DNA of 64,000 nt. Source: Lepidodermella squamata. Lineage: Eukaryota; Animalia; Gastrotricha. The stretch lies in NCBI GenBank assembly GCA_047495785.1, contig JBLDXI010000042.1, forward strand, positions 3,410,001-3,474,000, in the 5' to 3' direction. A program made the translations under genes and the position numbers. Under the pieces are notes generated by a model that was given only the letters and a program-made list of their open reading frames with translations, was not told where the DNA came from and did no database searches. Shown piece after piece: positions 766 through 59,591 of the stretch (positions within the stretch are counted from its first letter, which is position 1; each line of letters begins with the position of its first letter).

Positions 766-828
766 CTACTTGATAACAAAACAAAATTTCGCTAAAAATC
801 TGAAAATTACGAATAAATGTGTGTAAAA

Positions 829-3800
829 TCAACAGAATTCTTGTTTTGGAGAGCGTTTCAAGTCGATATCTGATTCCATATTCGAGCTCCGTTTTCGGCT
901 AGTCAACGTAACACCATAAACAATCGAATTTTCTCTAACAGGAGGTTTGGCGGCAACTTCCTCATCGTCATCCGATATTACTATCAATTCCGATTCGGGT
1001 TCAGCCTTGCAGAAGCAAGGCCGTTCTGGAAGCGATTCGCTCTGGTAGACTTGTTTATTCTGGTAAGGTATAGATGGGTTCTCGAAAACACCCGAAATCG
1101 CCTGAGCAGATCCGATTGCATTTTTCTGGAGTGCAGAAATGAAAACTTGATAGAACGTATCGCACAACTTTTCGGGACAGGAACTGAGGTAATTTTTCAC
1201 CTCTTCCACGGCTTTACTCAACTTTTCAGGTTGCCTAGCTGTAATAGGATTTATCGCAGCCAGTAAAATTGACAATTTTCGAGCAGCCCGCTGCCGCCCT
1301 GATAATTCAGGCCAGTTCGTCTAATTTCGGTCATTTTTCAAAAATCAAGAATATTACGAAATTAACCTACCCTTTTCAACAAGAGAATTTCGTGAATAGT
1401 CGCTTTCATAACGTCAGAGCTCTCGTTTTGTATACCGATTTCGGACAAAGTCTCGAAACAGCCCGATAATTTATCGCTCATTCCATTAGCTTTTGCGTGA
1501 GATTCAAGGTACTTTCCAGCATCAGTCATCATTTCCATGAGACCTTCGTATGCATGCTCAGTATTCACTTTCAATAGGCTGTCCAAAAATGTCATCACGA
1601 AACCGAAAGGAACGCAATTTTTGACGTATAACAGCCCGATTATTCTACCATAAATACATAACTTCGACTGAACTCAGATAAAACCTAAAATAATACCTCG
1701 GGGTCTCAATTAAATTTCTCTTCAATGAAAAATGTAGCTCATCGACCTGCCCTCTCAACCGTTTCTGCTGCCGAGGCTGTGTTGAACAAAATTATTAAAG
1801 GTAATAAAAATATACGAAACAATACCCAATCTGATGCTTGAATTTCACACTCTAATCGCGTCAATTCGCTAGAAATATGCTCAATATGAACATGGCTGAC
1901 GTTATTCAACCAAATTTCTTGCATAACAGCCATAAAACGAACACCTTTATCGTTCACAACCTTCAAATGAGATACGTTTTTAAGAAGTTATACCAACTCA
2001 ACGAGAGACAAACAAACCAGGCCGAGAGAAATGATGAATTCGCAAGCTCGATTTCGAGTCTTGCCATTGTGAATTTTATCTAAAATCCCGTTGCTAATTA
2101 ATCCGATGGAACGCTCAAACTCGTTCAATGAAAGATTTTTCAACGATGTCTTGAAAAGTTCAGCAGTTTCCGCGATTGATTCATCCGATTGGAGATCAAG
2201 CTCGTCGATTTTCGTATGAAAATCAAATAATTGAGACGGCTTTTCTTTTGGTGGAGCAGCTTCATTCAACATCGGATCATCCGCCAGATGAATTTTATTT
2301 GTCATTTTATGATTTTTGTGTTGCAATTTTGCTGACAATAATTCGCCTTGACCGTGGATGAAATTCCTGATTTCTTCGATTATCTCAGATCCGCTCAGCG
2401 AGCCGTCGAGAGACAAAGTTTTCAACTTCGCCAAACATGAAGAAATCGCCTTTTTCGACCCGCTTGATAGCATAGAAAACGTCATCGAGTCAGTTATTTC
2501 GGCAATTTCCGAAAGAAATTTATATAGAACTTGCAATCGGAGAATGTCTTCTTTCTGCGGGTTCTTTAGGTCAATTTTACACGATGCTATCAAACCTTCG
2601 GCGTACAACTGATAAATGCTGCTCGACAACAATTCATCCTCACAAAATCGCTGAACCAGCCTGGAAAATTCAATTAACATTGAAGTTTTTCCAGGGGGAA
2701 ATAAAAATTACTTCAAAAAAGTTCTCAGGCGATCTTGATCAACGGCTTCAGGATTAGTTCGAATAGCTGACTGACGTGCCCATGTCATGATGTATTTGTT
2801 GAAATATTTCCTACCGTCGAGTCTGTCCTTCTTACGGCCATTCAGTATCTGAAGAACGGAGATTAACATACAAGAACACTTTTTTGAATATTCACGGCAT
2901 ACATACTTGGGCGAAAAGCTGCTTGACAAAATAGTACAGCGCATTGGACGAATCGGTATCAAAGTCAATTACAGACGACGTCTAAAAAATAATAAATTTT
3001 AAAATCGAGCTAAAAAATCATGCCTAGTTTGTTGACAAGGCGAAAATATTAATCACTTAAGAATCCGAATCATTTTGACGCTTCCTATGCCTCCACGAAG
3101 AAAATCATTGAAATACCCCGAAATTTCGAATACCATTTACTCATCCCTATCTCCGGGTTTCAATAGTGAGACATTAGAAGGATTTTTCCGGTATTTTATT
3201 TTAAACATTCTTTGCAGGATCTCGATTCTCGACTCAGCATGCACGTTTGGCATCCTTATCTGGCTAAACATTTCGGCACCTTTCTCGAGCGCCGTGGCGT
3301 TCTCAGTGAATAAGATAAATTCGGCTTGGAGTCGCAACAAGCAACCGCCAACAAATGAACGCAGTAGTGATCTTCAAGTCTTTATGTCCTTAAAAAGCGG
3401 TTGTTGGCCAATCACGACACGAAGTATTGGAACAGTCTCTAAGCAGCGCGCTGGCTAGCAACGTTTCTCGACCCAAGATTTCGAAATTCAGATTTTCTGC
3501 CCGAAGAGAAGATCGCAGAGAAGATCGCGAGTTCAAGAACAATATGCTCAATGACTTGAAAGAGACGATATTGAACGAGATGAACAGAGCAGCCGGGAAC
3601 CGCGAAAAGCAGCCAAATGTTGCATCCATACGTGTGTATGTCTCGGAGTTATTTCCACATGGCCCTCTCACACCCATGGCTACAGCTCCCTGAGTTATTT
3701 GAGTTATTCCTTGAGGAACCCCGAGTTATTTGCTCACCTTCGCCTTGAAAACCCGATGCTTTATTTCCTTTCCTCTAACAAGGCGCAGTGTGTTTTTACC

Positions 3801-6800
3801 CTACAAGCTTTCAACAGTTGTTGTGTTATTTTTGTAATTGAAGGAGGCTTCATTCTTTATTTCTTTGACAGTGCGGCCGGCAGTCCTGTTTTTTCAATAG
3901 AATTACCTTATGGTCCCGACTGCTCGCCTGCCCTCGCTGAACTGATTGGGCAATCTTTGGACAGTGGGCAGATTTTGGACGGTTACGGAATTTGGAAAGA
4001 CAGAGTTCGAGCCGCCAACACCGTGGGCAAGCGTGAAATTTAGGCCTGCGACTTTTTTGGATACTGATATGACGGATTTTCGGAATTTTTGGATTTCTTT
4101 TCTAAAGATGATTTTGAAAACTCATTGCGAGTCAGTAGTTGAGAGCATGGGGTCAGTTCTCGATTGCCATGCGTCCCACGATTGGCCAATCAATGCTGCG
4201 GTATCTCGAGAAGTATTCTTACACTTGAAAAGGCCGAATCTGCCCATCAGAGCTCGGACAAATTGCTGCCCTCGACCGTCATTTCCAAGGGGGCAGGTGG
4301 AATTTTAAGCCTGAATCCGACCGGACACGAAATTCAAGGATCTTAGGGGTAAAAAAGGGGTCACAAGAATTTCCTCCAAAAATCCTTGCCATTGACGAGT
4401 GCCTTTTCAACAACAATGGTATTTTCAATCCAACGAAACACACTATTCGGCATCTATTCTTTCGACAATGTAGCCCGATGCTTCGAAAAATCCGTGGTGG
4501 GATTACGAATTATCGGAGGAGTCTAGCTTGACATTTCTTGAAAGCAACCTTCTCAGTCAGACTCGAAATCGACGATGAGGCTCTAGTTTGGAAGTTAGTT
4601 GACAAGCGACACGAACCTTTGCTAACGAACCTTTTCAACTGTTTTAATGGGGTTTGGACCTTCTGACCTCAACTAGACTATGTAGCTAGGGTTTTCAAGC
4701 ATGCCCAATAATTATTTTCGGGTCTGGTCGATCGCTGAACACTTCTCCTCACTCGTATTCGTGCAATTGGTTCAATTTCAGTCTTTTTTCTGATTCTTAC
4801 ATATAGGTAGCCGTATTGCTTTTTATTAATGTCTGAACCCGTGAATATTCTGGGAAGATTCTGGGACGGACCGGCGAGATTCCGCCGACCGACGACTTGC
4901 ATCTGCCTTCTATTATTTACTTGCCGATTTATCCGATGCCAACACGCTGCCCGAACGTAGCCTCGAAGCCGGAGGAGCCTGCTATAGAAGAAGTGTTCTA
5001 GCTGATAACTTGCTAAACGTTGATGATTATCTAGTGCCATAGAAGTTGTGCCATAGGAATATTGCTATTCCTATAACGGCATTAATGCAGCTTCTAATGC
5101 AGATATCTGTTTTTGTTAACTGTTTTCCAGTTTAGCGTATTTCAATTGCCGTTATTATCACTGCAAAAGTATTGAGGTTTGTCAACCTCCAATACTTTTG
5201 CTTCACTCGCTATTACGTTCCCGCGAAGGAAGAAATTGCCGAGAATCGCGGCGACACTTTGAATCGACCGGCTGCTATTGGCCCTCTCATCGAGCTAGCC
5301 GATACGGAAAATTACCGGTTCGAGGACCTGGAGTTGACGATGGAACAGATCCTCGAGGAAACACCAATTCAACCGGGTCGCATGTGCCGAAAAAGGCAGC
5401 TTGAACGGGCTGAAACTGCCACGCCTGTGATGGAGGTGAAGACGGCTAGAAAGGGTGGTTAAGAAAGCTTTCATGCTTCCTGTGACGACAGTGTATTATA
5501 TTATTGGATATATCATTATAAACAAGATTATAGGTTTTCAGAATTTAATTTAGTTGAAGTTTATTTGAAGAGCTCCTTGGGGCTCGGGGCTCTTCTCCTT
5601 CTTGGCTTTCTTCTTTAACTCGCTTTTACGAGAAAATATAAAATTAACGATTGTGATTAATTGCTCTCCTGTTTTAGATTGTTTTCATCTCGTTGTTACT
5701 CGATTGCTTTACAGCGCAGTCGGTATTGGCCACGGAAGATAACCAGGTAAGGGTCTCGATCGTTACATTGGCGCCGAGACCCGTTTTGGTTAGTGGTCGT
5801 GTGTTTTTGAATTTTGTGTCTGTGTTAACCTTGTTTCCGTTTGTTTGATGGCGGGACTCGGCAGGGGGACCCCACAGTCAGCGGGTAGGGTGGTGATGCC
5901 AGGAACCCTATTTGCGGGCGAGCAGGACTCTCAGGGGCAAGAGGATTCTCAGGATTCCCAGGGGGAGGTGCTCGTAGACCGATTTAGGATATCACTATTA
6001 CTCGTGGGAGGGTTCCAATATCCAGTGGCATTGTGAGATATCTTATGGTCGAAATCTGGCTCAAACCGAGTTCCCCTTACTATGTTGGATCACGTGATCA
6101 CAGACGCCATTCCACCGTTTCTCCTAGGCTACGGCCCCTTCGTCTTGCAGCTTGCAGAATTACCTGACACTAGCGCAAGCTGCTATTTTCTTGCTTTTGC
6201 AACAAGAGTTGATGTTCGAACGCCTGATCGATGAGCCTAATGCAAGGCGGGTTAGTGATCTCGGCCTGAAATGGGCCTGAAATGGCCTGAATGAGCTTTC
6301 GACGTTTCATTCACCTTCGAATTGTATCTCGGCGTTATAACCCGCCAACTACAATCAGCCTCCGGTGTTCCTGTACAACTGGCGAACCGGTTTGCTGTTG
6401 TCGACTTCATTCGAACGTGACTGGAATATCTCCGTCTGGGTTTTATTGCTCCGGAAACACCCGACGCCAAAACGCGGCGTCAACAAAAACTCAATTTTTC
6501 CAATTTTGCCATTCAACGGCGCATGTAACTAGGTGGCGGTTGTCCTGGAATAATGTCGCGCTTCCACGAGGTAATATGGAATGGAGCCGAAATGTGTCGA
6601 AATGTGTCGCAATGGCGAAAAGACGGAGGGTTTAAGATTCCACATCGGGCAACGCATCAAAAGCCGTCTGATGGACCTACTTGGGAAGGAGTTACTGAAG
6701 ACTTGTCCCATCGCCGGTGGCCGGGCTAAAGTGGATGGCGTGGTTGTTACGCGTCAAATCATACCCGAGGACCGCATTTTGAAAAGTAAGCTCGACGTGT

Positions 6801-8392
6801 CTATTTGCTGCTTTCGGCGTGTCTAATTCTTTTCTCTTCGACAGATTTCTTCCTCCAGCTGCCGGTCGTGCGATCTATTGGGCAAGACATGTCACGCAAT
6901 GCCAAAAACTACCGTAGTTACCGAAATACTAACCCGGGCTTATACAAAAATGATACCTCGAAAAATGGGGAAAAGTAGGCTTCTATTCAAGACTAGGCTT
7001 CTATTTGAGATAGGCTTATGCACGGAGACCTGACGTTACTTTCCGTCTTTCAATCTCAAAACTCATCAAAGTATTCATTATTAGTTATTAGCTAGGTCGT
7101 CTAATAGCTGGAAATCAAGACTAATAAGGAAAGCTTTCACTAAAATCATCATAAACCGCAGATTATTCCATATCTTCACGCATATTTCCCATATGCGATA
7201 CTGAATTTCTACTTACGAACTTGTTTTCTGAATGACTTTAGCCGTAAAATATTTACACTTTCGTGTAATAAACGAGAGATGAAAATTTTTATATTGATTT
7301 TTGACAGCTTCAATTATCAACTGTTTTTACACCAGCGATTTCTCTCTCATTTCAAGGCCGCGTGAGGCGTCATTAGGACTCAAATTCGAAATACACTCAC
7401 CTTATCCAAGACTGAAGCCGCAAAGTCAGCTCGCAACTTTTCGTCGTTGATGTGCTTTGCGAAATATTTCTTCAAGTCGCCAAGCAAACGATGAGTTTGG
7501 TTGTAATCTTCGACAACTCCACTGCCGAAAATTTGCTCTAGAAACGAGTCCGCAGTAGTTGACGGGTTCTGCTCATCAGGCGAATTATAACTGAAGACTG
7601 GAAACTTGATGTCACCACATGATGCCAAATGCTTGTGATCATGATTTCGACTGTTCAAATATTCGAATTTTTCTGCGCTATTCAACTCAGGAGTTTGCAA
7701 CATAACACCTGCAAGATGGCACGACGCCAAATTCAACGCAGAAATCTGGCTTGGATTCAACTTGAAAATGCCTTCAAGTTGCAATTCGTCGAGAAATCGA
7801 ACATAATCGCATAGGAAATGGACCGATTTCCGGGCTCCTCTTGCGCTGAAAGTCGCCATTTGCTTGAACAAGGAATCGACTTGAATTAGATCCTGTTTGG
7901 CCAACTCTTTAAATAGCCTGAAAATAAAAAATGCATTAAAAAAAATATTTTTTTTTTCAAAAATTTATACCTTAGCCTTGAGTCCATGAGCTCTTGGCTA
8001 TATGCGATTCTATGTCGTGGAATCGCCGAGTTTATTACGGTTTTGAAAGCACTATCGAATCTGACTTTTGCCTTAAGCTGCCGAGTTTCCTTGAAAATAC
8101 ACGATTGATAACCAGAAGAAAATAAGATACTCGGACTCACTGCGATAATTGATTTCAAAAACGTCACGAAATTCGGAATCACTTCAACGTCCATTTTGTA
8201 GCCAATCATGATCAAATCAGCCGCAGCACGAATCATGTCAGCGAACGATTGAGCCTTCAATAACAATGGCTTTACTTCATTGACCACACGCCTAATTTCA
8301 GCCATCGAAGAGTCGGATTTTAAGGCGGAAATTATAGGACCGAATGAAAGCTTGTTACTAACAGGCTTCACTTTCTCCTTCTTTTTACCCAT
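829..8392 (-). CDS. G2: protein with three MIF4G-like (eIF4G-derived) repeats and a Cys/SUMO/SIM/NLS tail
   Basis: Exons ~8392-8141, 8090-7971, 7917-7401, 2982-2907, 2847-2711, 2660-2019, 1961-1826, 1777-1697, 1645-1372 and 1320-829 splice in frame. The last repeat IIGLLYVKNC...AYEGLMEMMTDAGKYLE...SSDVMKATIHEILLLKR/TNW resembles eIF4G FIGELFKLKM...SLECLCRLLTTIGKDLD...SSRIRFMLQDVLDLRGSNW. Confidence 0.85.
5481..5785 (+). mobile_element. 5' LTR plus primer-binding site of a decayed LTR retrotransposon
   Basis: The termini TGTGACGA (5481) and TCGTTACA (5767) are imperfect inverted repeats. They are followed by a tRNA-complementary-type PBS, tTGGCGCCGAGACC. Degenerate internal sequence follows to about 6300. 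Confidence 0.65.
6910..7040. mobile_element. Degenerate small MITE (taccgta-type end, internal aggcttctatt repeats)
   Basis: It starts taccgtag and carries three aggctt(c)tat repeats. The design resembles the intact element at 24794-25245. Confidence 0.35.
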
Positions 8393-8460
8393 TAAATTGT
8401 AAAACCTATAAAATTAAATCAGTTTTCTTTTAAAAATAATTCACTCTTTTGGCACAATTT
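8393..8460 (-). promoter_or_regulatory. Intergenic spacer with a donor-less splice acceptor (putative trans-splice site for G2)
   Basis: 68 nt separate the G3 stop from the G2 ATG. The minus strand reads ttaattttatAG|gttttacaatttaATG. Confidence 0.5.
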
Positions 8461-11400
8461 CTAAATTTCAGATTTGGGCGAACGTTTTACAACAAATTCT
8501 TGATTAAAATCGGAATCATTCGCCCTTTTCCGATTATGTCGCGAAACGCCATAAACAATTATTTCGCGATCGTCAAACATTGATTGAGGTTGGTCCATTC
8601 CTGTCGATTCGGGTTCGACCTTGCAAGAGCACGTATCGGTCTCGAATTGATCAAAATGCTCATGGTCTGATGTCAAAGCAGAGGTACCAGAAGACTGCGC
8701 AGCTTCGATTGAGCTCTTTTGTAAGGCCGAAATGAAAACTTGATAGAATGATTCGCACAATTTGGGCGCACAGGAACCGAGGTAGTTGTTGACTTCTTTC
8801 CCGGCATTGGCTAGTTTTTGCGGGTTTTTCGCGGTTTCCGGGTTGATTTCTGACAACAGAATCGCCAATTTTCGAGCAGCTCGATCACGAATAGACATTT
8901 TCGGCCATCCAACCTAAATTTACGAAATAAGATACATTTTCAGTCATTCGTTTAGGTTTCTATTCTCGCGATTCGTGATCATTACTGATCTCACGCTATG
9001 AAAGCATTGAGAACGATTTTGGGTTTCTAATCAATTTTGAAGCTCGACCGATTGACATTATCGCTGGATGTCATCGGCTGGTTGGTACCCCGACGATATC
9101 AATACTGGACGACCGAGATAAGAGACTTAATTACATTGTTTTCAAAGCGTCTGTGGAGGAAGCCGGTCGATGTGCGACTGCCGCATTGAAGTTCATCATC
9201 AACTTCAGTCTATTAAATCTTTTTTCCCAACGTGTTCACTATCTACACAATTTTTCCAAGTTTGATTATTACAAATATCACTGACGAACGTTCTTTTTCT
9301 AAATTAGCAAGAATCAAACTATTTTTAGGTCGACGATGACCCAAGATCGACTCAACGGGCTTGCAGTAATAACGATAAATCATAACCTTTAGAAACTGAT
9401 TAATACCGAAGCTAGAGAAAATCCAAGACGAAAATGTAGAGACAATATGGGCCGAATTAAAAACTATCTTCTTCGAAGATCATTTTTCTAAAAGGTTCGA
9501 AAAATTGTGTAGGGCGCAACTGGATGTATTTTATTAAAACGATTAAAATGACAAAATAACAGATTATTATTAGTATCATTACAGCACGCGATCTTCGCGT
9601 CGCGTGTTAAGCTACATTGGCGCCTAGGCGCCGTAACACCTGTGTGTCAATTATTCTCCCGTAACAATAGAAGAAAACGCCTATTTAAACTGACTGTTTT
9701 ACTATCGTATAGTATTATCGACCAAACGCCCAGAACTCACGCTTGTCACTTTTATATCTCTGCTTAAAACTGTGATTCAACCTGCTCATCACTAATTATA
9801 TGCTGCCTTCAAATTAGGTTGTTTTATGTCACTGATTTAACAATAAACAAGTTCTTGTAACCGAGCCGTTATTCTTATTCCGCGAGACACGCCTCACAAA
9901 TTGAAAAAGCGATGACATCGCAAATCTAGGCGCAGGCGATGGTTCCGACATGAGTTATCTCTTTTTTCTCTTGACAATCATATAAGCTGTATTGCTACTG
10001 AGCCTAGTAGACACCCTATTATGTCTTCTTTTTTATTTAGAATTGTCAATGATTTTAATGGAAGAGGCCCCGATGCTAAAAACTGCCTAGGGCCCCGGAA
10101 CATTTTCGGACATTAACGCTGACGCTAAGCAAGGTGAAATTCGAAAACCAATCGTACCGGCACTATAGAATTTGGAAAAAAATCGCCTCCGATGTTAATA
10201 AAGACTGTTCGACGCCTCCCACGACTAATGGCTAGCAATGCCGCCTGAAACACCGCGATTTGAAGCAGATGTACTCCGAAACGAATTTTTACTGTATTTA
10301 GAGTACTTCAAGTAATAACATTATCAGCTAATGCAGTATAATTGATTTATCTTCCAGCTCATTTTCATTAAGCGGTTGCTGATGTCAACGGACGATTTAT
10401 CGACGTTCTGTGATATTCCGGGAGGTCTAACGAGCGCAGTGTATTCAATAGAAGCCCATTATTACGATCAATAACCGAAAACGAACCCGCGTTCTTCACT
10501 AAATTTCCACATTTTAGGCGTCGGGGCTTATCCGCTACTCGATTGGCTAATGATTGGCTATTCGGCTCATGAGATTGCAACAGAAAATCCTACTGGCCAA
10601 CTTCGTTGTTGACAAGCCAGGGCAGTTCTTACCGTAGAGGACGCTTATCTACGGAAGTCATGTTATGAGTCTTATCTAATCGGTGTGAAATGCCAAAAAT
10701 ATAGCTTCGAGACTTTCGTCAAGATACGCCTGATCAGAAGAAAGTCACCAAAGTTATTGGTGGAATCAACTTCTAGAACGGCTTCGAAACTCTGTTATGG
10801 TCTATGGAATCCCAGAAGCTGAAATGGTTCCTGAGCTAAGTGACATAGCGATCGAATGTTTCCGGAAACATTCCCAACAAAATGTATCCCAGATCGCACC
10901 ACAAGGATGATTAAAGCGTTTGTTAATAGTGTGCTAACCACAGCATTCAAAACAGCGTTACCTACGGAATGAAAATCGAGCCGATGTCTAGTCTATTGGA
11001 TATGTCGAAGAAACTCGTGGAATATGCCAAGCGTACGACTAAGAATAAGACGTTGAAAGATGCCAGAATCAACTTTTTTCGTTCAATCCTAGTTTTCCGT
11101 TTTTAGGACTCAAAAATTGAAGAAGAGTATCGACGCGTTTTCAAATCACGGCGTACTTGCTTCCTAACTGTTGCGAATGTTGCGAATTCCCGACAAGAGG
11201 ATCCCAAAAACAGCCAGAGGAAACGGACGGGTCACCAACGTCCTAAGAACCAACCCCCGGCAAAGCACAACAAAACGAACATTGCGCTTGCAAATTTTCA
11301 AGAGGATATGTAGAAGATGGATGAAAGCTCAACAGGCGACCTACCTACCCCCGCACCGAACTGCCCTGTTCTGGAGGCCCGCCGTTGGAATCTGACAAGT

Positions 11401-15146: not shown

Positions 15147-15185
15147 TTTAAAGCCTAAAAGTATCAAAAAAAGCCGAAAATAATA
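15147..15185 (-). promoter_or_regulatory. 39-nt intergenic spacer with a donor-less splice acceptor (putative trans-splice site for G3)
   Basis: The minus strand reads TAG tattattttcggctttttttgatactttTAG|gctttaaaATG. There is no GT donor between the stop and the acceptor, and no room for a promoter. Confidence 0.55.
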
Positions 15186-20269: not shown

Positions 20270-20320
20270 TTATTACAACATTCACCTACAAAAATCAAAA
20301 TCAGAAGCTTTTATTAAAAA
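20270..20320 (-). promoter_or_regulatory. AATAAA followed by a donor-less acceptor upstream of G4
   Basis: The minus strand reads ttAATAAAagcttctgattttgatttttgTAG|gtgaatgttgTAATAAATG. Two in-frame stops directly precede the ATG, so G5 and G4 cannot be one ORF. Confidence 0.55.
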
Positions 20321-44943: not shown

Positions 44944-45119
44944 ACAAAATAGCTAGAAAATTCAGATTAAATCATCGATAAAGTTTCTTTCAATTAGAAA
45001 ATTTGACAAAATTTGGAAGCACAACAACGAGATTATATAAGTAGATATGTATGAAGTTAGATCAGTCATTTGAGTAGAATATGTCGTGTTAAGATCTCTC
45101 AACAAAGCGGAGTGGGGAG

Positions 45120-46220: not shown

Positions 46221-46365
46221 TTTAGTCTGCAAGCCCCTTCGATGTACCTTTTTCCATAAAAAAATAACTTCCTAGCAAAATAAATCGCTGTATTCAAATC
46301 ATAAATGCAAATTGTTGGAAAAAGCAGATATATAAGAAAATTAAAATATAATCACAGAGCTTGTT

Positions 46366-49300
46366 TTAATGCTTAGCAGAAGGGCCCGAGTCAGCAATAC
46401 CACTCAGGGGCCGTTTACGAGTTTGAGACTCGCTAGTTTGAACCTCCACAGGTTCTTCTTTGAGACAAGATTCACAACACAACGAGTTCGAAGATAGATC
46501 AGAATTTCGAGGAGCGCCATTTTGAAGCATTTTGAGCATTGTATCGTGGAAGGCCATGCAAGTTTCGCTCGCTGAGCAGTGCTGTTCGATGAATTTTCTG
46601 GCGTCAGCAAAACTCGAAGGGTCGCTTGGCAGCATTTTTCGTAATTTTGATTCGAAAGTGAGAACCATCTTTTGGACCGAAGATAGTGGAACCCAGCCGT
46701 TCTAAAAATGAAAATTTTGATTGTAGAAACGTAATAGCTTCGAACCCATAGAAATCAGTAAAAACTTGACGCTTTTCCTTTTCGAAAAATCGAAACCCGA
46801 AAAAACAGCTGTAACATCATTATTACTGATTATTGATCTAGGTCCCAAAATTAGGTAACCCTGTCAATGTGACCCATCCCACCTCATGATAAAGGAAATA
46901 GCGATCTATAGAAGCCAATGTGCTAAAAGAGGACCAACCTTTTTAAGCAGTAGTATGTCCTCAGCTAGGGATTTGAGCCGTGACGAAGAGTCGACACTAG
47001 CGAAGACAGTGTTCAGTTTTCCGAAAATTTCATCAAACATCGGCCTCAGATCTTGATTGATCGCCTGAGATTCAATAGCCGTCCCAAATTCACCCAACAT
47101 AACTTGCATGCCTTCGTAAACGTGTTCGTCCCAGGTGTTCACCAATACATCGAGGAGAGAGATGACGTAGGTCACCGGGGTTATTTCCGCCGAAAATAAT
47201 GTTCCAATCAATTGAGGGCAATAGATCGACTTGCTCTGATAATGTTGCTTGAATTCAGCCAATTTTTCATTCAAAATTAGTTTTTCTCGAGCCTGATAAA
47301 AAATGAAGGAATAAAAATTGGGCAAAAAAGCCAAGAAAAAAATCTAACGGTATTAGCATGGTTCAATTCATCGAGCAAAGCTGAGATCTTTGCCTTATTT
47401 TGATCGAGTTGATGCGAAGAAAACATTTCAAAGCATTGTTCTTGAAGTTCGGCAATGAAGCTTTTGCAGCAGTTATTCGTGACCTTGGCAAGAGAGGAGC
47501 AAACTCGAAATCCGAACTCCAATGATCGAGTTTTTCTGGCTTCATTCACAATCTGGATGAAATGTATCAAACACTCAAAAGTAAAGTTGAAATTAAAAAT
47601 TACCCTTTCGATCAGCACGGTTACTATGTCCCGGAAAACTGATGGTGGTTTCAGTTTTAATCGAGCCAAATATTCATCGGCTTCCAGCTGGGCATTCAGC
47701 AGAGAACCACTGACTTCATTTCGATTCGTATCCGATTTTTCAGGGCTAAACCCGAGAGAAATAGAACTTTCCAAAGCAGCAGCACGTTTAACCCATTCTG
47801 AGCTCTGTTACGAAAAAATTAAAAGCGCGAAAAAATGAAAAATTTGCTTACGTGGCCGATTTGCTGCAAATATTGAGTGATTTCATTCAACTTTGGAAAA
47901 CTCGTGAAATCCGCTGCGCCACACGCGATTGTGAGAAAGCGGCACGCGAGCGAAAACAGAGCACACTCTTCATCGTCGAACAGCCAGATTTTCGCGCGAT
48001 ATAACCGATCGACCTCTTGGATGAGGCGATAAATGAAAAACACGGATGCGTGGTTGCGGCGGGCCATTGGCCGAGAAATTTGGTCTTTGTAGACTTTGAA
48101 GGAGACCAGGCCAATTTTACACAGTTCACTGTGGTACCACAGCTTGTTAGCGAGGGTTTCAGCTGATTCGAGAACAAGAGGGCATCGGAATTTACCCAAC
48201 ACCCACTCTTTTACAGCCGAAGAAAATTTGAAGATTTCTTTTCCATTCGAGATCGAACACTGAATAAAATCGATTTTATGAAAATCAATGGCGTCAAGTT
48301 AAATTTATACTGATTGTAAAGCTTTGAGCAAATTGATCGCATGGCTCGGCAGATGAGTTGAATCTGAGCACATTTCCAGAATTTTATCGAGAAGATTGAA
48401 AGTGGCGATTCCGAAGGCTGCTCGAGAGGACATTTTGTTGAATGCTTTCTTCAATTCGTCCGAAATACTCGCTTCGTTTTCCGGCTTTCGAAACAACTCG
48501 TCGACTTTTTGTTTAACCTCATTTGGACCGAAATCAGCAAGTTTGGACACACCTTTAGCCTGCTTAGGCTTGGAACCTTTCTTTTTAGGTGTTGGACCAT
48601 CTTAAAAAATTAAGAAAATACTAGAACAAATCGATGAGAAATCAATAAAATACCTGGAATTACGATTATTTCTGGAGATTTGGAACCATCCCGGCTAATA
48701 GATGAATTTGCAGCGTTATTCGGCAGCGAATGAAATTGATAGATATCGAACCTCTTGTCTCCAAGAGATGCCCATTTGCTTATGTTGAATTTCTACATTT
48801 TGAAAACTTAGATTGAAGATTAAAACAAATTCAGCTGTTGTTTTACCTTCGATTGCGAGATCAAATAATTTTGTATTTCAGTGGCCTGTTCTTGATCGAC
48901 GCCGAACCACGAGCGGGTTTCGAGGACAGTTGAATGAAGAGTTTCGATGACCAGCAGTTGTTGCTGTCGGTGCTTTTTCGATGGCGACAAGCGTTTACTG
49001 CTCAACATTTCATCGATTTCTTTCAGATAGCAATGCAAAACATAGCATAAACGACCACATTTCTCAGCACCATTTAGAATATCAACGAGGGTATTAATCT
49101 GAATTGTCTCGCTTTGACAAAGAAAAACGCATAGCCATAGCTTGTCAACACTTGAAAACGCAGATTCAACAGTGCTGAAATATTTTTGCAGCCAAAGCTT
49201 CGCCGAAGAGTTGAAACCGATGTTCTAGAAAAATCCGCCTTAATATTGAAAAATTGAAAAATGTATCATGAACTTACGCCTTTGAACGCCTTTAGGATTG

Positions 49301-50399
49301 TTGGAACTTTCTCCTTATCAGCACTGAGTAGCTCGTCGAAAATCGTCAGCCAGACCTCATTCGCCGATTCGTCCAAGAAAAATCGACGAGCGAAATTTTT
49401 CAAACTTCTCCCATTTTTTTTCTTTTCACCGCTGATAATTTGCTGAATGACCCGTTTTAGATACGACAAGCCAGTAATTCGATCGCCAACAGGCAACGGA
49501 AGGCCGTGGGGGAAATCACAGGAATGTTTACGCTGATGACAGCCGCCACGATTTGCGAGGAAACCAGAAATTTCCTTAGCATAGGCTTCGTCGTTAAGGC
49601 GGATGTTTAGAAAAATATGCCGGAAGTAGCACGCCATTCTTGTCCACGATTTTTTCTCCCGATCTTCAGCTTTTTGCGCGAGATTTTCGTCATAGTTACG
49701 CAGCATTTCGTAAACGTAAGGCACGGCCTGTTCTAAGCTTCGAGTTTTGATCAATTTCACAGTTTTCAGGAACATGACCACCCGCGGTAATACTTTCCGA
49801 AAAACGAGCTCATTTAGGAAGCTAGAATTAATTAATAATATGCATGACAGCGGAAAACATGCAGTTTCACTTCATTACCTCAAACAAGTTTTAAACGCAA
49901 TCGAACATGGAAATTGTGAGGGTGAAACAATGAGAGCAACTGCTACGAGAGAGGCTCGAAATTCCTTTTTCCTTTTTGGTTTATTCTGGCCCTAAAATGA
50001 GAAAATTGTAATGAGAATAACGATTCACAAGAAAATAATCACCACAACATCTCCGCATTGTTGCAATAAATCGGCAAGAATAACTTGTTCAGCGGCACTT
50101 TTCGCAAGGTAGCCCTGAAAAATGACCTTAAAGACATTGAATTCAAAAATTCTAATTTTTCAAACTTTGTAAAATAGAAATTTCATCGCATCATTCCACA
50201 TCTCCATTTTCCCATCTGAATTTTCGAGAACAGTGAATAATTTATCGAGGCCAGCGACGGCTTCATCCATTTGATTATTCGTCGGACTATTAAGCAGTGA
50301 ATTCACAATGGTCGAAATACCAGACTCGCCGTTATTTTGAACCCGATTGACGACAACACGCCAAAAGTCTGCGACAGAGTGTCGATTCATATTAGCCAT
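46366..50399 (-). CDS. G9: protein with four MIF4G-like repeats and a Cys/SUMO/NLS tail
   Basis: Twelve exons: ~50399-50166, 50115-50043, 49992-49878, 49821-49278, 49226-48847, 48793-48654, 48600-48310, 48259-47852, 47804-47604, 47553-47348, 47292-46940 and 46701-46366. The last repeat SFIAELQEQCFEMFS...ELNHANT/AREKLILNEKLAEF...PQLIGTLF...SSRLKSLAEDILLLKK/NGWVP matches the metazoan eIF4G MIF4G, including its coiled-coil insertion and the NWVP exit. Confidence 0.87.
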
Positions 50400-50488
50400 G
50401 AAGAAGTAATCAAAATTCTAACAAAATTTGAAAAAATTGGGAATTAATAAGTAATTAAATATACTAAAAACAAATGGCCTTGAACGGT

Positions 50489-53400
50489 TCATCTTTTGGC
50501 ACTTGGCCCGTCGTTATTGAGACTAAATCGCTTACGAGACCTTGGCTCAACGGGCTCTTCCTTACAGCAAAAATTATTCGATTCCTCAGCAACAGGCTCG
50601 GAACTTACTGGCACAGTTGCGGGGGTCAAATTCGACCTTAAAGCAGCCAACAAAACAGAATTGAAGGCACTACACTTCTCGTTATTGCAATGGGACAATA
50701 AAAATTCCTGAATTTTTTCGAAAACTTCCGGGTTAGAATCAATCGACGATACCATTTGCTGAAGATCTACGACTGCTTTTTCAGTCTCAGACATGACTCG
50801 CCATTGATTCTGAAAAATTGCGAACATAAAAATGTTAAATTTCATAATTTTTACGAACTTACATTTTTCAAGGCGATAATTTTGCTGACAATAGACTTGA
50901 GTTTATCAGAGCAAGTTGTACTTGGCATAATTTCATTCAATTTTATGAAGCATTCGTTCAAAAATTCCTGAAGATCGTTGGAAGATGCTTGTGATTCAAT
51001 ATCCGTTCCGCATTCCGTGAACAACGTCAACAATCCTTCGAAAATACTTTCATCCTTGGTTTTGATTAGCGTATCGATGAACGATACTAAGTAAGAAACT
51101 GGAGTTATTTCGGCTAGAAATAGTCGACCGATTAGTTGCGGTATGAATAACGCTTTGGCCTGCACAGATTTCGAGAAAGTTTCAAGCGAGTCGGCTAAAA
51201 TGAGTTTTTCCTGAGGCTGAAAAAATCTGGAAATTTATTCAAGCCCAATTTAATAAAAAGAATTTTTACCGAGTCACAACACGCTAATTCTTTAGTGAGC
51301 TGGGCTAATTGATTCTTGGATTCATCCATCTTTCGAGACGAGAATAGCCCCAAACATTGCTCTTGGAATTCAGTTATGAAAGTTTTACAACAATTGCTCT
51401 TCAAATCGCGAAGAGCTTCGATTAGATCGACTCCAAACTCGACTGATTGACGGGTTTGAATTTGCTCAAGAATCTATAAACAAATAATTTAATAGCTATC
51501 ATTTTGAATAAAAAGCCGATAAAACATACGAGTTCGATCACCTGAGCAACTTCATCGCGGAAAGTATCAGGAGATTTCAACCTGAGCCTCTTGGAACAAC
51601 GCTCAACTTCAGCTTCGAGGTCATATCGTGGTAAATCATCAGTTTTGCCGGTAAGCGGTGGCGAGGCTGATTTAGGCTGAGATTGCAAAGCTGGGCGAAT
51701 TTTCGGCAGCCATTTTGAATTCTGGAATAATTGCAAGTAACATTATGACTGAATAACACGACAAAAAAATAGAAATTATTGCTACGGACTGAAAGCAAAA
51801 AATAACCTGATATAGCTACGTAACTATCATCTATAAAGTAGTAACACTACCATCAACTCATTACAAAAAAATCGCACGCGTTGCCAAGAAATAATTCGCC
51901 ACGCGCTTTCACAAGTAGTCGTGAAAAATAACACACATTTCTAATATTCACGACCTCAAATTTTCAGACATTAAAAAACCAAAATAATTGCGGAATAAAT
52001 TCAAAATCTATTCAAAATCACCTGTTCCAATCTTGCCAAAAACTCTACAATCTCTGCTTTTTTTACGAATGTAGAAAATTCCGGTGATTTACACGCGTTC
52101 GATAAAAAGTGGATAGCTGTTTCGAAAAAGGCTCCATCTTCTTCATCGAATTCCCACGATTTCGCCCGAAACAAGCGATCAGCCTCTTGAACTATCCGAT
52201 AGATGTAGTAAACTGTGGTTGGGGTTCGTTTGACCATTGGCTTCGCCGCGTGGTCTTTTATCACTTTGAACCGAACTAGACCTAATTTGCACAATTCGCT
52301 GTGGTACCAAAGTTTCGAGGCGAGAGATTCTGTTAGTTCCAAGGTGGTAGGGCATCGGTATTTTCCAAGAACCCATTCCTTAACAGCAGCTTGGAAACGA
52401 AAAACTTCCTTTCCACAAGAAACTGAGGCCTTAAATTTTGAAAAAATGATTAACAAATGAATAAAAAATTATGAAAAAAAATTACTGTCTGCAGATTTTC
52501 CAGCAAATGTTTGAAATGATTGGGCAAAAACGAGGCTGAGGCGCATTTTTCCAGAACGCGATCTAGTAAGTTGTAGCACGCGATTCCGAACGGCGCGCGC
52601 CCTTTCATTTGGCTAAATATGGACTTGAGCTCGGCGGAAACATCTTTCAGTTTAGACGGGTCCGAGGATAATAGGTCTACTAATGACTTGATCCGATCGG
52701 GATTGTGAGAATCGGATGACGAAGCAGCTTGAGACCCTTTCTTTGTGTCTTTAATCGGATTATCTGTGATAAAAAGAACTTGAATAGCCAAAGATAAAAA
52801 ATGTCCGCTTGGAACCTGTAGTTTTTTTCAACGGTGTTTTCGCCGGAGAAGGCTGATGAGCTAAATAAAAAATTCAAATTAATATTTTAATGCGTGAAAA
52901 GTTGTAACATAGCTCAAACTCGAATGATCTCAAAAAACGAATCTCGGGTTTCTCAGTCCTCGCTTGGTTGCTTGAATTAATACGAAATTTGGTCACAGGT
53001 ATCAAAGGTACTAAATATTTATGGAACCTTGGGTTGGCCATTCTCATAATCTCTCCACGTTCGCGATGAGCGCGCCTCCAGTACATACTGCAAACGCTCA
53101 AACCCCTCATAGACCTACTCTACCGAGCCGGTTTATGCAGCTCTCAGCATTTTGAATAATGGTCATAATTCAGATTCTTGGACAACGAGAGCAACAGCAG
53201 CCCATTATCGAGGTCCTGCCCTCTCAGCGAGAGGGGGGCACGATTGTTCTCGTCAACAGCTTCAAGTTTGTAGCGAGGGAGCGCCGTAAAGACGGAAGGA
53301 GCGTGGCATGCAGCGCCAACAAAGTCTGCAAAGCAAAAGTCATTGGCCGTTTTTCGAAATCGACAGCGACAATCCACAGCACGCGCATATGCCTCTGACT

Positions 53401-56400
53401 GAAAGTCAAATTTCAACGACGAAAGTCAACGCAAGGGTTATAGGATGTGGCTATTCGCTTTCTCTAAGGCTGAAGTCTGAACACCCTGGTTACAGCTTGC
53501 TTCAAGATCTACTCTTGTGGCTACATGCGGGTGATGCCATGTCCCACCTTGAATTTCTTCACGATTGGTGATTGCGAATGGGAATGGCAGTCCTTATAAG
53601 CCATTGGAAGGGCTAACAGCGCCGGTCAACAGCGACGTTCACGGCCGACAAGGAGCTTGAGCTGTGTGCAAGAAGAAATCGCGCAAATCGCGAGTGCCCA
53701 AATTTGGGCTCGCCAGTAGATATGACTACTGAAACGGCTAAATTGCCGGCTTTGCGATTCACAGCTGGCACCCAGGCTTTCAACATGTCATCGGGACTAG
53801 CTTTTCAGGTCTCAGGTGAGCTGCTGACGGACGGGAAGGCGAATTGGCCTATCGTACGGCTTGGTAGTTTCAAGCCCGTCTCTAGAGTCACTGCATTGCC
53901 AGAGCGGCGGCGATCGTTGTTCGTGGACCCTACTATGTACGGCCACCAACAGGGCGCTGAAAAGGTGTTGATCCGTGCAGACTCAGTGCAGGCCGGTGTT
54001 GTTGAGAAGCACATTGGTCTGGAGCCTGAAGTGCTGCGAGCCGTGGCTGAGAAAAGCTCAACTGATGCTCAAGGTGCCACCGGTGAAATTCTGCCGATGT
54101 AGATTGCATTGAGGGTTGACTGAAACAGATTTTGATTGTGTGTTATACTCCTAGGCCTTCCATCCACAATAAACTTGTTAGCTAATCTGTGTTTAGAGGT
54201 TCTTCTTAACCCAAATCTGCCAAATTCTATTACCAGTATTTATCAAATTTCCTATTTATCAAATTTTCAGTGAAGTGCCACTGAAATCGATTCCACTCTG
54301 TTTCAAGCGGTATGTGGCCAGCTAGATGCAATGTTCTGAATTCTGCAATTTTCACTTCCGATTTTGCAATTTTCTTACGATGACAAATTCCAAAATTTCT
54401 TCAGATTCAGAAGATGTGTGTACAGTTTGTCATGAAGTCCTGGAGGAGCCGGTCAAGTGCTCTCAAACCCGAAAACAGACGATGTCACCTCGACTTGTTG
54501 TTTCAATTATATCTGGGCACAAAGGCCACCCTTCCAAAAAGGAAATTCACAAATCGGTTTCCTCGACTAGCAGCTTGCCTCGTACAGAACTTGATGATGA
54601 CTGGACTTCAAAAGCAAAATCAGCGCTCGATGGCACGGTTTCAGTGTGCTGGAAAAATTAAAAATCCCAGGCGTGAGAAAGTGGCTCTGTCACTACGTCG
54701 TGATTTACGACGTTCGGGAACGTCGAGAAATTGAGCGTTTAGGGAATCAACTAATATATATGATTGAGCTAAATTCAAGGAAACGCTTCGAAACAGTACT
54801 CAGAAACATCGAATTTTGGCAAAGTTGAAACAAATATTATGAACCTTTGACGGCTGAATTTGATTTGGGTGGTGAAACAGGCTTCGCAGGGCTAGGAACA
54901 GTAAGAGTGGTGGCAACAGCAGGAACCGGGACTGGGGCAGGTTTCTGAACCGGAACAACGTTAGTAATAACAGCGGCGGGAGTAAAATTGACCACTGGGG
55001 CAGCTGGTTGCAGAGCCTGCTCGATTTTTTTAGATTCCGATTTTCGCAGACATATCGCTCCTTTCCTCTATAAAAAAATATAAAAAAATTAGAAAAAAAT
55101 AAAACAATTTTACTTACTCTCTCCAGATCTGTTAAATAAGCCAGCATTTCAGGCACTTCATCCGAAAAAGCTTGACATGACCGTTTGAAATCTTGACTCC
55201 TCATCTGCCGACTGATGTAAGCAGGCAATCCAACGCCCAAATGGCTCAAATGAGCCGGTGACATCGGGGTGGCTTCATTATCGTAAAACTCGTCCATGTC
55301 TCGGATGAATCGATACAGCAAGTAGCAACACGCCGAAGATTTGTAGTTTTGCAAGATTTGAGGCAAAACTGTTGGCGCAATGACCTTCGCTTGGGCTAAC
55401 GCCGTCACGTACCATACTTTATGAATTGAAGGTAACGGATTATCGGAAATTCCGAAGGTCTCGTTCAACCAATGAGTAGCTGAGTCTTTGAACCCGAAAA
55501 TTCTCTAAATAAGTCAATTCATATAATTTGGAAATGTATTCAACATTTCTTCTTACTTCTTTTACTAAAAAAATGGCGCTCGATCCGGCGGTTCGTTCAA
55601 GCCTGGAAATCTGAAAAATCCAGCCTAATAATAATTTCACATAATTTTAATTGAAAATTTACCGCTTCGTGAATCGAAAATAACGCGTCAGTTTGGAAAT
55701 CATCGTAAAGAAATCGTTTCACCATTTCGCTGATTTTTCCCGATGGATTTTCGCCATTCGAATCGAGATCGATAATTTCAACAATAAATCGTTTCAACGC
55801 CACCATTCCAGTTATTCGATCGCCAGTCAAAGTCTGGATACGGGAAGGTAGTGGCAATCCGTCTGGGTAACTGCATGCTTCATCCGAGTGCGTGTGAATG
55901 ACGTCACGTGACGTTAAATAATCGGTTATTTCCTTCGAAATTTCCAACTCGCCGGGCGAAATCATTTCATTGGCGATCAGATTCAAGTAACACGCCAGTC
56001 GATTCCAATGGTGACTATCATTACCACCGAAGCAATGCAATTGTAAGACATCGTTATTCTTCAACAAATCGAGGAGGTAGGGAGCGGCTAAATGAAGATG
56101 GCGAGATTTTGCGATACGTTTCGCGAGTCGATACAAAACATGAGGTGGTAATCGATTCACCTTGACCAATTCATTCAAAAACCTTGAAATTAACGTTACT
56201 TTCATTCATTCAGATAAAGAAACAACAGACTTGAGTGAAATGAAATAATCCGAAGTTCGACGGCAAGATGGAGGCGGAACACTTTGAACAGCATTAACAA
56301 GTGCCATGGTGAAGGGTGACAGATTTTTCCGATCACTGGCAATAGAGCCGACTTTAACCTATAGAAAGGATTCACTTTTCAATTCGATATTTTTCAATTT

Positions 56401-59400
56401 GCGATCAGCTCACTTCGCCGCAAAGGGAGAACAATTTAGCTAGCAAGTGTCGTTGCGGTTCCGTTTCCAACGTGTAACCCTAAAACACACATAAATAATC
56501 GATTACCTTTCAACTCCGAAACTTGGACTTCAATTGTCATTATTTACATACAGAAAGTATGACGAGCAGGGTAGGTCGCTACGCAAAGCCGAAAAATTCG
56601 TTTCCACAGTGATATATAGCAGCATGCGTAATATACAATGTACTATGCTAGACTCATTGCTGACCAGTCGCAAAGCATGATAACAACGCAAAAGTATGAA
56701 TTACACTCATAGTAAGCTACAATTCTATTAACATATAACTTTTTCATATGGACTCATCGAACGATATCGTCGGCATGAAGACAAACTGTCGTCAAAATGC
56801 TTCAGTATTAAGACACCCAAAATTATTTGCTGGTGTTATTAGAACTCCTAATATCGCCGGGGTCAAGACCTGGTGGGACGGGCAGCTTGTTGCTGCGGCA
56901 AAATCTTCGCGACGGGGCGACCTGGAGGTGGACAAAGAGCAGCCGGGTCTCCTTTTTTGTCATGTCCTTAGTGGATAAATGCGGTACCGTCTCACAGGTA
57001 TAGATAATTACGACCGGTGAATCTCGCACTTCCCTTGCTTCCACCAGCCTCCACCAGGGAATGGGTACGTATTTCGTCGCAACCAGTTCTATGGAATGGT
57101 AGACGAAAACTGGGCTGGGGTCCCCTCACACATGGAATACCCCAGCGAGCTACAGAGCCATGCCGCTGATAATAGTTTGGACCTTTCTATCGACAGTGCG
57201 GCGAGTGATGGCGGCGGCGCTAGCTTTGCTGGCGTTGGCAGACGTAGCCACAGCTTCAGCCTCATTTTCTAGCTCGTTTTGTTCCTGTAGGGACTCAACA
57301 GGCGATTGCACTGACCGGAAATCTGCCCCTCTCGCGGGCGCTAAACTAGTAAATTAATACCAGAACGCTTCAGTGATGTAAATATTTCGTCAAGAGCTTA
57401 GTGGTGCAAATATTTAGACCCCATTGAAATCTCAAACATCTGTCGTCTTTCTTCAACATTGATTTACCGTGTCTGCCTAATTTTTCATTCATCAATCTTG
57501 TGTCTGGTGCAAATGTATATACGTTTGATATTAATTTTGATACTTCGAAGTACATTTCACACCAACTTGCCATAAGTTTTGCTATTTCTGCATGTCTGAA
57601 CGGTGAAATTTTACACTTTGTTGCAGCCTCTAGTGGCCTCTAGCCAAGTACGCACGACTGACGAACTGTTGAAACTGTTAACGGCCCAGCGTACCACACG
57701 CGGGGGATGGCTCGACGCCTCTAGCTTTAAATTGACTACATTTTTAGCTCTTTGTTACGCTTTTATTCTCGTTCTATTTTACAAACTAGTGTTTCATCAA
57801 TCTTATCTTTATCAAATATCTTTACAATTATTTCAGGCGTGCTACCACCGTTCAACGCTTGGCTGAACGTGCAGCCGAATGGCATTCCTATGGCACGTGA
57901 GCACACTCCATCATTTCAAAAATCGTTCACTGAAAACTGATCAATTATTATAGTTGAACAAATTTATCAGCTGAATCTTTATCAGTGCGCGGTCCAAGTT
58001 GCTGTACGGGATAAAGTAAACCTTATTTATGAAAAGGTATTCTATGAGGACTTGCTGCTGCAGGTATAATTTAACCTCATTAGTAGGTATGCCTTCTCCA
58101 CATTTCGTCGTTTGTCGTTGTGGTCGAGGGAATAATTTGCGTTTTTTTTATTGCTGTCGGCTTAATCCTGCTAATCGTGATTCGACGCCTTATTCGCAAT
58201 CTGTTGGAAGGTAACATCTTGATGTTCCATAGGCAGAGAAAATAATATTATTATTTCTCTTCGTCGACTCGAACGACACTCAAGCCAAAGCTACGGCCGA
58301 GCTACGCCAATGCATACCCGCGATCGAAACGACTGTTGAAAGTGGTCAAGAAAACGATGTCATCGATTCGGCGAAGCGACCCTGTCTTCAACCGTCGGTG
58401 TCTGTTGAGAGCGGCGATGATGTTTGGGCGGACTATGACGCGAAACTGGCTGCTGTTCAGGTGTCTACCCTCGATTAGATATATGTGTAATTTCAATTTC
58501 AAGCGCGCCAGCCGGCAACAGGTGGTAACAACCACAACGAAGACGACGCGTGATGCGTGATCACAACAGCAAGGCTCTACACAGACTGCTCCAAGCCGTG
58601 ACTGCAACAGCAATGACAATTAAAAACTCTTAAAAATTTCTTCTGAAATCTGAAATCTTGTATTGCCTGAAAAAGTTTATACTGCTAAAATAATAATACT
58701 GCTTGCCTGTTAAATATTTCCTTTTAATTGGAGTTTACTGGGACAGCCAAGCCTGCTGCTACTACTCTGATGGACACTCGAGGGCACAACGTTGTATGTA
58801 CCCGAAATGCCTGCATACGGCTATTAACTACTAAGTCGGCGAGTCTACCGGTTCTCGTGGTCGAAAGCGAAAGTCATTGCTTGATGGTTGGTGGTTCGGT
58901 ATTGTTAGCGAACCGGGCCGAGTTCAACCTCGCCTCAAGTGAGTTCTCCTACTCGCCGCTCAGCCCGTCCGAATCGTTGCCCGACGATGTCCGCGGGGTC
59001 ATCGTCCGTGCGGCTGAACCCGGATGATGGTTTGCGTTTTGTGCTAGCCAGCACGAGTCACGATCTAATCATTCATTTATTTACCCATTAGTTTTTATCT
59101 ATTTGTTACTGACTTAATATGATGAGGGGCGGTTGATTCCGTTGAAATTTTCCCTGCCATACTTTGGTAAAACTACGTTTTCATCGTCTATCTTCTATCT
59201 TTCCAGCTAATGCAAATCACTTTGTGATATTTTTGACAACTCACCTTGCTCAGAATGCAAGCTATGCCATCTTGCAAGTCAGACAGCCTCGTTAGACGCG
59301 CCAAAGCCGCCCGAACTTGCTCCGTGGCTTGTTCAAATGAGATAGAACTCGGTTCGGAAAACAAAGCCGTCAAAATCGGCGACAACGCATAAGGCCCAGG

Positions 59401-59517
59401 TTTGTGCGGATTCGAAAAGTTGGCGTACCAAAATGATCGCAAATCATTTTCAGGCTGCGGCCGGTAATAGGTGCTGGTATGCTGCTGAGGTGCCGGATAC
59501 CAAAATGGCTGAGCCAT
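50489..59517 (-). CDS. G10: protein with four MIF4G-like repeats, closest paralog of G9
   Basis: Exons ~59517-59245, 56479-56414, 56358-56232, 56182-55663, 55610-55557, 55505-55118, 55067-54846, 52860-52816, 52763-52486, 52429-52021, 51721-51529, 51473-51270, 51217-50863 and 50809-50489. It is collinear with G9 (GDRITG, AFGIAxxNLLD, AVKEWVLGKxRCP, KLWYHSELCKxGLV, PQLIGxLFxAEITPV). Confidence 0.87.
53190..53700 (+). mobile_element. FLYWCH-like zinc-finger / MULE-associated remnant
   Basis: SQREGGTIVLVNSFKFVARERRKDGRSVACSANKVCKAKV resembles a FLYWCH domain. The downstream sequence is disrupted. It lies antisense in a G10 intron. Confidence 0.5.
58310..58480 (+). mobile_element. Gypsy integrase remnant
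   Basis: YPRSKRLLKVVKKTM...AAMMFGRTMTRNW resembles the integrase motifs YHPQSNG.AER and PAELMFGR. It is degenerate. Confidence 0.4.
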
Positions 59518-59591
59518 TATATAGGGAAAATCACGAATTAAGACACCCTAAAACTTGAAAATTAGATAATAAGAATAAGCAATATATTTTG

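Follow-up and report, generated by a model that had tools for sequence, protein, structure and literature searches.

Eleven genes follow each other head to tail on the minus strand of a 64,000-nucleotide (nt) stretch of Lepidodermella squamata DNA (contig JBLDXI010000042.1, positions 3,410,001 to 3,474,000; hereafter the window). The question raised by this locus is whether the genes are co-transcribed and resolved by spliced-leader (SL) trans-splicing, or whether each of them is transcribed separately. The original prediction, made from the letters of the window, proposed a single trans-spliced polycistronic unit of more than 60 kb. Trans-splicing is proven for this genome, including one internal junction of the array, and the operon-type packing is real. 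Operon-style expression of the array is plausible, whereas the single unit is unlikely as stated. All positions refer to the window unless another record is named, and the features are listed in Table 1.

RNA evidence was taken from the assembled contigs of a public sequencing run (X1), which behave as RNA, over positions 44600-50599, an interval that includes three junctions. Contigs of this kind cannot reveal precursors, transcript starts or poly(A) sites. The contigs contain thirteen joints that have CT..AC ends when read on the plus strand and correspond to minus-strand introns of the GT..AG type; the length is 47-57 nt in twelve of them and 237 nt in the remaining one. One contig runs past 44954 into 26 letters that are absent from the window. 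Read on the minus strand, this loose end consists of ATCTGCGTATCGATTTTCGAATTCTA, followed by an AG shared with the genome and by the exon that begins 9 nt ahead of the gene F ATG. The leader, here termed SL-A (26-28 nt, ending in …CGAATTCTAAG), is joined exactly at the predicted acceptor 44953 in the gene F mRNA. The stop codon of the upstream neighbour of this leader-bearing gene is 176 nt away.

The source of the leader is found in the ribosomal DNA (rDNA). The 28-nt SL-A sequence has 553 genomic copies, many of them spaced 8.46 kb apart, and the SL-A gene is located in the rDNA repeat unit between the 3' end of 28S and the 5S gene. Downstream of its exon come a GTATGA donor, an Sm-like site (AAUUUGA), a GC hairpin and a run of T; in L009 the unit reads ...ATCTGCGTATCGATTTTCGAATTCTAAG, directly followed by GTATGA...AATTTGAGGGC...GCCCTC TTT. 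Leader exon, GT donor, Sm-like site and hairpin are all present, and the locus is a textbook SL RNA gene. SL trans-splicing is real in this genome and is used at the acceptor of junction 7. A second leader gene, SL-B (ATCTGCGATTGAATATTAAATTTTCTGAG followed by the donor GTTAGT; L009:1970-2000, minus strand), is part of the rDNA unit as well, where it lies upstream of SL-A at a distance of ~470 nt. Its leader ends in …AAATTTTCTGAG and shares the first seven bases with SL-A. SL-B has 539 copies genome-wide, many of them outside the rDNA. SL-A is the sole leader observed on a downstream gene.

An acceptor signal of the same quality precedes every ATG of the array. A weight matrix was trained on 102 acceptors of short cis introns of the region, and an acceptor was accepted if its score reached at least the 10th percentile of real introns at a distance of at most 60 nt upstream of the ATG. 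Such an intron-grade acceptor was found before 10/10 ATGs, 8-51 nt away. The background is lower: only 20% of the ATGs in the 204 kb examined have an acceptor of this score, and ten out of ten would be expected by chance with a probability of ~1e-7. The nine T-rich TAG acceptors named in the original prediction were all recovered, with the matrix preferring 26640 at junction 5, where 26650 is a second AG. The several candidate AGs predicted for the spacer ahead of the left gene are present as well. TAG occurs at 9/9 of these predicted acceptor sites compared to 41% TAG among cis introns (p 6e-4). When the pick was made blind to position -3 across 17 junctions including the flanks, the YAG sites comprised 11 with T and one with C (p 0.001).

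The packing of the genes was examined at the ten junctions. All coding exons of the window are on the minus strand; the window has 41% G+C and only two open reading frames (ORFs) of more than 250 amino acids (aa). Eleven units (left gene, A-I and J, equivalent to G1-G11) were delimited by a simple exon-chaining model combined with paralog comparison. The ten head-to-tail junctions and each of their predicted spacer lengths (Table 1) were reproduced exactly. The first Met is invariant in an alignment of the N-terminal exons of genes A, B, C, D and F (five copies), and C-terminal tails of the type CxCK...KRSPK or GPSAKR recur immediately ahead of the stops. Gene starts and ends are therefore real.

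The distance from stop to acceptor is 28-54 nt at four junctions. AATAAA is found 22 nt (junction 4) and 30 nt (junction 6) ahead of the acceptor in the two spacers of ~230 nt, which are essentially the 3' untranslated region (UTR) of the upstream gene, with the acceptor of the next gene straight after it. At junction 8, X1 contigs cover 46318 in the gene H 3' UTR, 48 nt beyond the stop and 46 nt short of the gene G acceptor, and RNA is absent at 46257-46268. Three spacers (39-68 nt) are too short for a 3' UTR plus a promoter. Judged by stop codons, AATAAA signals and gene H RNA, there is little space for a promoter from the upstream 3' end to the next acceptor. The layout is that of the operons of Oikopleura, Ciona and chaetognaths (PMC7986045; PMC12460157).

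The acceptors resemble ordinary intron ends, as would be expected if the units were fused into a single giant gene or a small number of genes, with cis-splicing from upstream donors to the junction acceptors. Such an arrangement is highly improbable, as it is the leader and not an upstream exon that is joined at 44953. In addition, in-frame stops are located between acceptor and ATG, or just before the ATG, at most junctions, including those predicted to exclude a fused ORF at genes C (G4) and the left gene (G1), which are present 3 nt before the ATGs 20269 and 765. The conserved C-terminal tails are followed by stops, and the conserved N-termini begin at Met.

The reading preferred here is that the array consists of several operons (or one), or is partially co-transcribed, and that the transcripts are resolved by trans-splicing (probability about 0.55). 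A ~28-nt leader from the SL RNA genes of the rDNA repeat would be joined to a UAG acceptor 8-51 nt upstream of each ATG. The leader, which makes the mature 5' end of gene F, would probably do so for the remaining genes. The upstream 3' UTR would run almost to the acceptor, and for this reason at least the tight junctions would most likely be co-transcribed with the upstream neighbour.

A number of observations weigh against this reading, and most of them would also fit a tandem array of separately transcribed genes, each having a compact promoter of its own, located either in the spacer or within the final part of the upstream gene; the leader would then be added to each monocistronic pre-mRNA after a short outron, and no operon would exist. 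The head-to-tail order and the common strand are explained by tandem duplication alone, and trans-splicing serves single genes too in known systems (PMC7986045). The five spacers of 129-233 nt could be room enough for a compact promoter, and a TATA-like TATATAA is found ~90 nt upstream of the proven acceptor 44953. Contig depth is unequal between neighbours, with 57-61 for gene G and 11-24 for its upstream neighbour H, a measure that is unsuited to ranking genes. No X1 contig bridging two genes was seen over 44600-50599. A verified leader is known for only one of the ten acceptors: the common leader that the original prediction expected on RNA exactly at the AGs is present at 44953, and the same contigs gave no loose end at either 46272 or 50418. 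The latter says little because contigs break at such branch points. Finally, gene E is probably a pseudogene by the look of its sequence: two frame changes are needed in exon 1 (34489-34266) to follow the paralogs, no counterpart of the second exon was detected, and a reverse-transcriptase fragment (RVT_1) lies within the gene.

Separate promoters are possible, if doubtful. Spacers of 39, 63, 68 and 74 nt already must accommodate the upstream 3' UTR, a poly(A) signal and the acceptor. The AATAAA directly ahead of the acceptor in the two longest spacers and the gene H RNA that ends at most 46 nt from the next acceptor speak against this explanation in the same way.

The opposite extreme, all eleven genes as one polycistronic unit of more than 60 kb with a single promoter beyond the right window edge, draws on the same junctions: all those in the window are tightly spaced and carry an acceptor, no convincing plus-strand gene breaks the run in the window, and the leader is used at one internal gene. 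The flanks suggest a different scale. The gene family, all on the minus strand, spans -78 kb to +114 kb around the window; its only interruption, at -44 to -8 kb, consists of other genes, part of which are on the plus strand. A crude ab initio model places all genes that it finds between ~-4.7 kb and at least +122 kb on the minus strand, and tight spacing in this one orientation persists for at least 60 kb past the right window edge. The promoter predicted to the right of the window is thus not evident just there, as the tight same-strand run continues. Flanking junctions of 62-125 nt with TAG acceptors were found at 114976, 109845, 105678, 100809 and 80104, and one of 316 nt at 65364, where the ATG of gene J (~65364) lies 316 nt downstream of the stop of the next family member.

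The run also includes genes of other kinds. Two or three paralogous RING-ankyrin genes are located at 97498-109845 (L016, L017) on the same strand, with spacers of 93-125 nt and TAG acceptors. A PPCDC-like flavoprotein gene is found on the same strand at -4104 to -4655 (L018:5345-5896, minus strand), 113 nt beyond the last family member and with an acceptor 11 nt ahead of its ATG; a query with this gene gave matches of 43% identity, and PF02441 is present in its homologs.

A single unit would hence have to span the run from ~-4.7 kb to at least +122 kb, which amounts to more than 125 kb and ~25 genes. In the literature that was compared, the longest operons have far fewer genes, namely nine for a chaetognath (PMC12460157) and seven for Ciona (PMC7986045). 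Several repeat-filled introns of 3-4 kb could hold promoters, and no precursor was seen in the contigs. The single-promoter unit is considered unlikely because a unit of more than 125 kb would dwarf the gene counts of reported operons. Of the original prediction, trans-splicing itself is borne out by the leader at 44953 and the SL RNA genes, and the tight packing is confirmed.

Kinetoplastids have hardly any cis introns, and every mRNA is trans-spliced. Their units are similar to the present run in that many genes follow each other on the same strand over long distances with leader addition; the run described here, however, lies in an intron-rich animal genome. That the whole run (at least 125 kb and ~25 genes, comprising MIF4G-like genes, the RING-ankyrin paralogs and the PPCDC-like gene) forms one or a few giant polycistronic units in this style is quite improbable. 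If it were the case, tandem duplicates could be born expressed, inheriting an acceptor rather than needing a promoter.

Parallels to operons resolved by trans-splicing are also found in other animals. The tunicates Oikopleura dioica and Ciona share with this genome (121 Mb) its compactness, introns of ~50 nt and a leader on genes with a close upstream neighbour. The 3' half of SL-A aligns 15/18 with the O. dioica leader (shuffle p 0.015). Tunicates carry cellulose synthase and GH6. A search of the whole genome for these two genes gave no match, and neither arthropod R&R cuticle proteins nor the nematode cuticle-collagen N domain were found in the genome; the same searches find the MIF4G genes. 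Intercistronic regions are very short or absent in tunicates, which is similar here, although the stop-to-ATG spacers of the array reach 233 nt. The O. dioica reference operons have intercistronic distances of at most 60 bp by definition, with a median of ~31-57 bp (PMC7986045). There are two leader genes here compared to one in O. dioica and Ciona, and operons made of paralog arrays are not described in the literature that was compared.

In the chaetognath Paraspadella gotoi, genes less than 250 bp apart were assigned to operons (PMC12460157). This system is similar in that its leader genes frequently lie within rDNA clusters, in the presence of several leaders, none of them reserved for operons, and in a burst of tandem duplication (PMC12460157). 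The published chaetognath leaders (GGAAGCT...TTTAAA, PMC2481426), in contrast, are unlike SL-A or SL-B, and the longest chaetognath operon, with its nine genes, has mixed housekeeping functions and is not built from paralogs (PMC12460157). The SL1/SL2 operons of nematodes resemble the array in short spacers between poly(A) signal and acceptor, in having more than one leader and in leader genes beside 5S rRNA. SL-A does not match the leader sequences of C. elegans (SL1), Ciona and rotifers with which it was compared. The Macrostomum leader was considered as a match to SL-A and rejected, as the sequences differ. A search of 8 million papers did not find the SL-A leader sequence.

Spliced-leader operons are a known kind of gene organization. 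The present array contributes the observation of a leader on a gene whose upstream neighbour lies close by, the TAG-only signature of the acceptors, and a description of how far such an array extends and what it consists of. Should the array be operonic, trans-splicing would keep tandem duplicates expressed without promoters of their own, as a new copy would need an acceptor only. This could help to explain bursts of tandem gene families in compact trans-splicing genomes. As SL-A matches no published leader that was compared, the lineage may be one in which operons have not been described yet. The expanded MIF4G-like family, kin of translation and mRNA-handling scaffolds, is of note in an organism with leader-bearing mRNAs.

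The array is composed of tandemly duplicated, fast-evolving genes. Genes A-D are full-length paralogs with 28-38% identity. Genes H and I form a pair of their own (26-30%) and have a C-terminal domain in common with A and C. Gene F shares its N-terminal 230 aa with A-D, followed by repeated helical modules, and is without the CxCK tail. The C-terminal exon of the left gene, in the flank (L018:8643-9593), encodes a MIF4G-like domain and the CxCK tail. The idea that the array is built entirely from paralogs is mostly correct; it does not apply to gene E, the probable pseudogene, nor to gene G, for which no blastp similarity to other window genes was detected at E 1e-3. The 3.5-kb intron of gene B is real, as a spliced cDNA contig from a related species (L025, Logan; 59% protein identity) spans it and joins the MIF4G-like exon to the last exon.

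Table 1 Genes, junctions and further features of the 64,000-nt window. Acceptor positions are the G chosen by the weight matrix.
Feature	Coordinates	Strand	Stop / ATG	Acceptor G	Remarks
Left gene (G1)	1..765	-			5' part, ATG 765, runs off left window edge
Junction 1	766..828	-	829 / 765	800	spacer 63 nt; candidate acceptor G at 800 (CAG), 793 and 768 (TAG)
Gene A (G2)	829..8392	-			~790 aa, at least 5 exons, one ~4.4-kb intron
Junction 2	8393..8460	-	8461 / 8392	8406	spacer 68 nt; acceptor ttttatag, 13 nt before ATG
Gene B (G3)	8461..15146	-			3.5-kb intron, ~12408 to 8913
Junction 3	15147..15185	-	15186 / 15146	15155	spacer 39 nt; acceptor cttttag, 8 nt before ATG
Gene C (G4)	15186..20269	-			~730 aa
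Junction 4	20270..20502	-	20503 / 20269	20286	spacer 233 nt; in-frame TAA directly ahead of ATG
Gene D (G5)	20503..26629	-			
Junction 5	26630..26758	-	26759 / 26629	26640	spacer 129 nt; two acceptors, G at 26650 and 26640
Gene E (G6)	26759..34489	-			probable pseudogene
Reverse-transcriptase fragment	27066..27894	+			Pfam RVT_1, E 8e-22; antisense in last intron of gene E
Junction 6	34490..34721	-	34722 / 34489	34507	spacer 232 nt
Gene F (G7)	34722..44943	-			~1000 aa; mRNA with spliced leader
Junction 7	44944..45119	-	45120 / 44943	44953	spacer 176 nt; acceptor ttttctag, 44954-44953; proven trans-splice site
Gene G (G8)	45120..46220	-			314 aa, 4 exons; all introns RNA-confirmed
Junction 8	46221..46365	-	46366 / 46220	46272	spacer 145 nt; acceptor 51 nt before ATG
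Gene H (G9)	46366..50399	-			at least 10 exons, most introns RNA-confirmed
Junction 9	50400..50488	-	50489 / 50399	50418	spacer 89 nt; acceptor tttgttag
Gene I (G10)	50489..59517	-			two ~3-kb introns
Junction 10	59518..59591	-	59592 / 59517	59548	spacer 74 nt; acceptor gttttag
Gene J (G11)	59592..64000	-			3' part; ATG outside window, ~65364
Module M1 examples	7401-7916, 14116-14757, 19274-19840, 25684-26340, 43309-43944, 49278-49820	-			

Profile and structure comparisons were used to characterize the encoded proteins. The profile of the C-terminal domain matches the MIF4G chains of eIF4GII, eIF4G1, DAP5 and CWC22; eight of nine PDB matches are MIF4G (best E 4e-4). An AlphaFold model of the domain has a mean predicted local distance difference test (pLDDT) score of 65, with ~90 over residues 120-200, and eIF4G HEAT1/MIF4G takes the top Foldseek ranks, with weak E values from 0.02. 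In an exhaustive hidden Markov model search, 114 proteins were found, and the named top ones carry Pfam MIF4G at the region that matches the profile. Pfam MIF4G (PF02854) itself gave no above-threshold match on the window exons, and the best member in the flank reached 27.3 bits against a cut-off of 30.8. Exon-wise Pfam scans are weak because introns split the domain. On these grounds, most of the array genes encode a C-terminal MIF4G-like (eIF4G-type) domain. The resemblance to eIF4G-type MIF4G (HEAT1) proteins is one of profile and fold; in contrast to these, the array proteins have no MA3 or W2 domains.

Some further observations concern the leaders and the RNA contigs. A loose end at 48602 was considered as a second leader site and rejected, as it belongs to an ordinary 52-nt cis intron. 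Dispersed copies of the SL-A leader are located at L002:1500-1525 and L003:1495-1522. The L003 copy has no GT donor; the L002 copy has a GT without the SL RNA intron, and an ORF begins ~40 nt further on. Retroposition of trans-spliced RNAs, or insertion into leader genes, may account for these copies. A homolog search with the alignment of the five N-terminal exons gave no 5'-end transcript fragments for other genes in collections that apparently do not include this genome, and exact look-ups of three flank proteins had no match in collections apparently without the genome's own records. An 11-codon upstream ORF (MEKGTSKGLAD, then stop) is located at 46257-46222 on the minus strand, between the candidate acceptor and the ATG of gene G. 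Several small indels at 46246-46268 in the DNA run X2 indicate that the gene G leader region is polymorphic.

Introns of 2-4.4 kb are placed differently among the copies (~3000-7300, 8900-12400, 16970-19270, 22125-25680, 35700-39800, 51721-55118 and 56205-59238). In a Pfam scan of 10 ORFs inside long introns and 24 exon peptides, RVT_1 was the single match, and scans for Rfam families and tRNA genes gave nothing in the window. G+C content is high (49%) over 10000-12000, and mirrored ORFs are found on both strands at 11693-12197.

Two other helical modules were noted in the family proteins, M1 and M2, of which M2 gave no match by profile and M1 none by profile or fold. A link to MIF4G was thus obtained for the C-terminal domain only, and a triple-MIF4G reading of the proteins is not confirmed. 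M1 is encoded by the second exon in most copies and has invariant D, C, E, R, H, C and L residues; its R..H(x)H...C stretch has a metal-binding-like look. The M1 model is all-helical (pLDDT 78) and matches no solved fold. Relatives of the family occur in other organisms, in L025 and in an ENA metagenome contig (L026, 37% G+C), where several family ORFs on the same strand lie beside a Patched gene.

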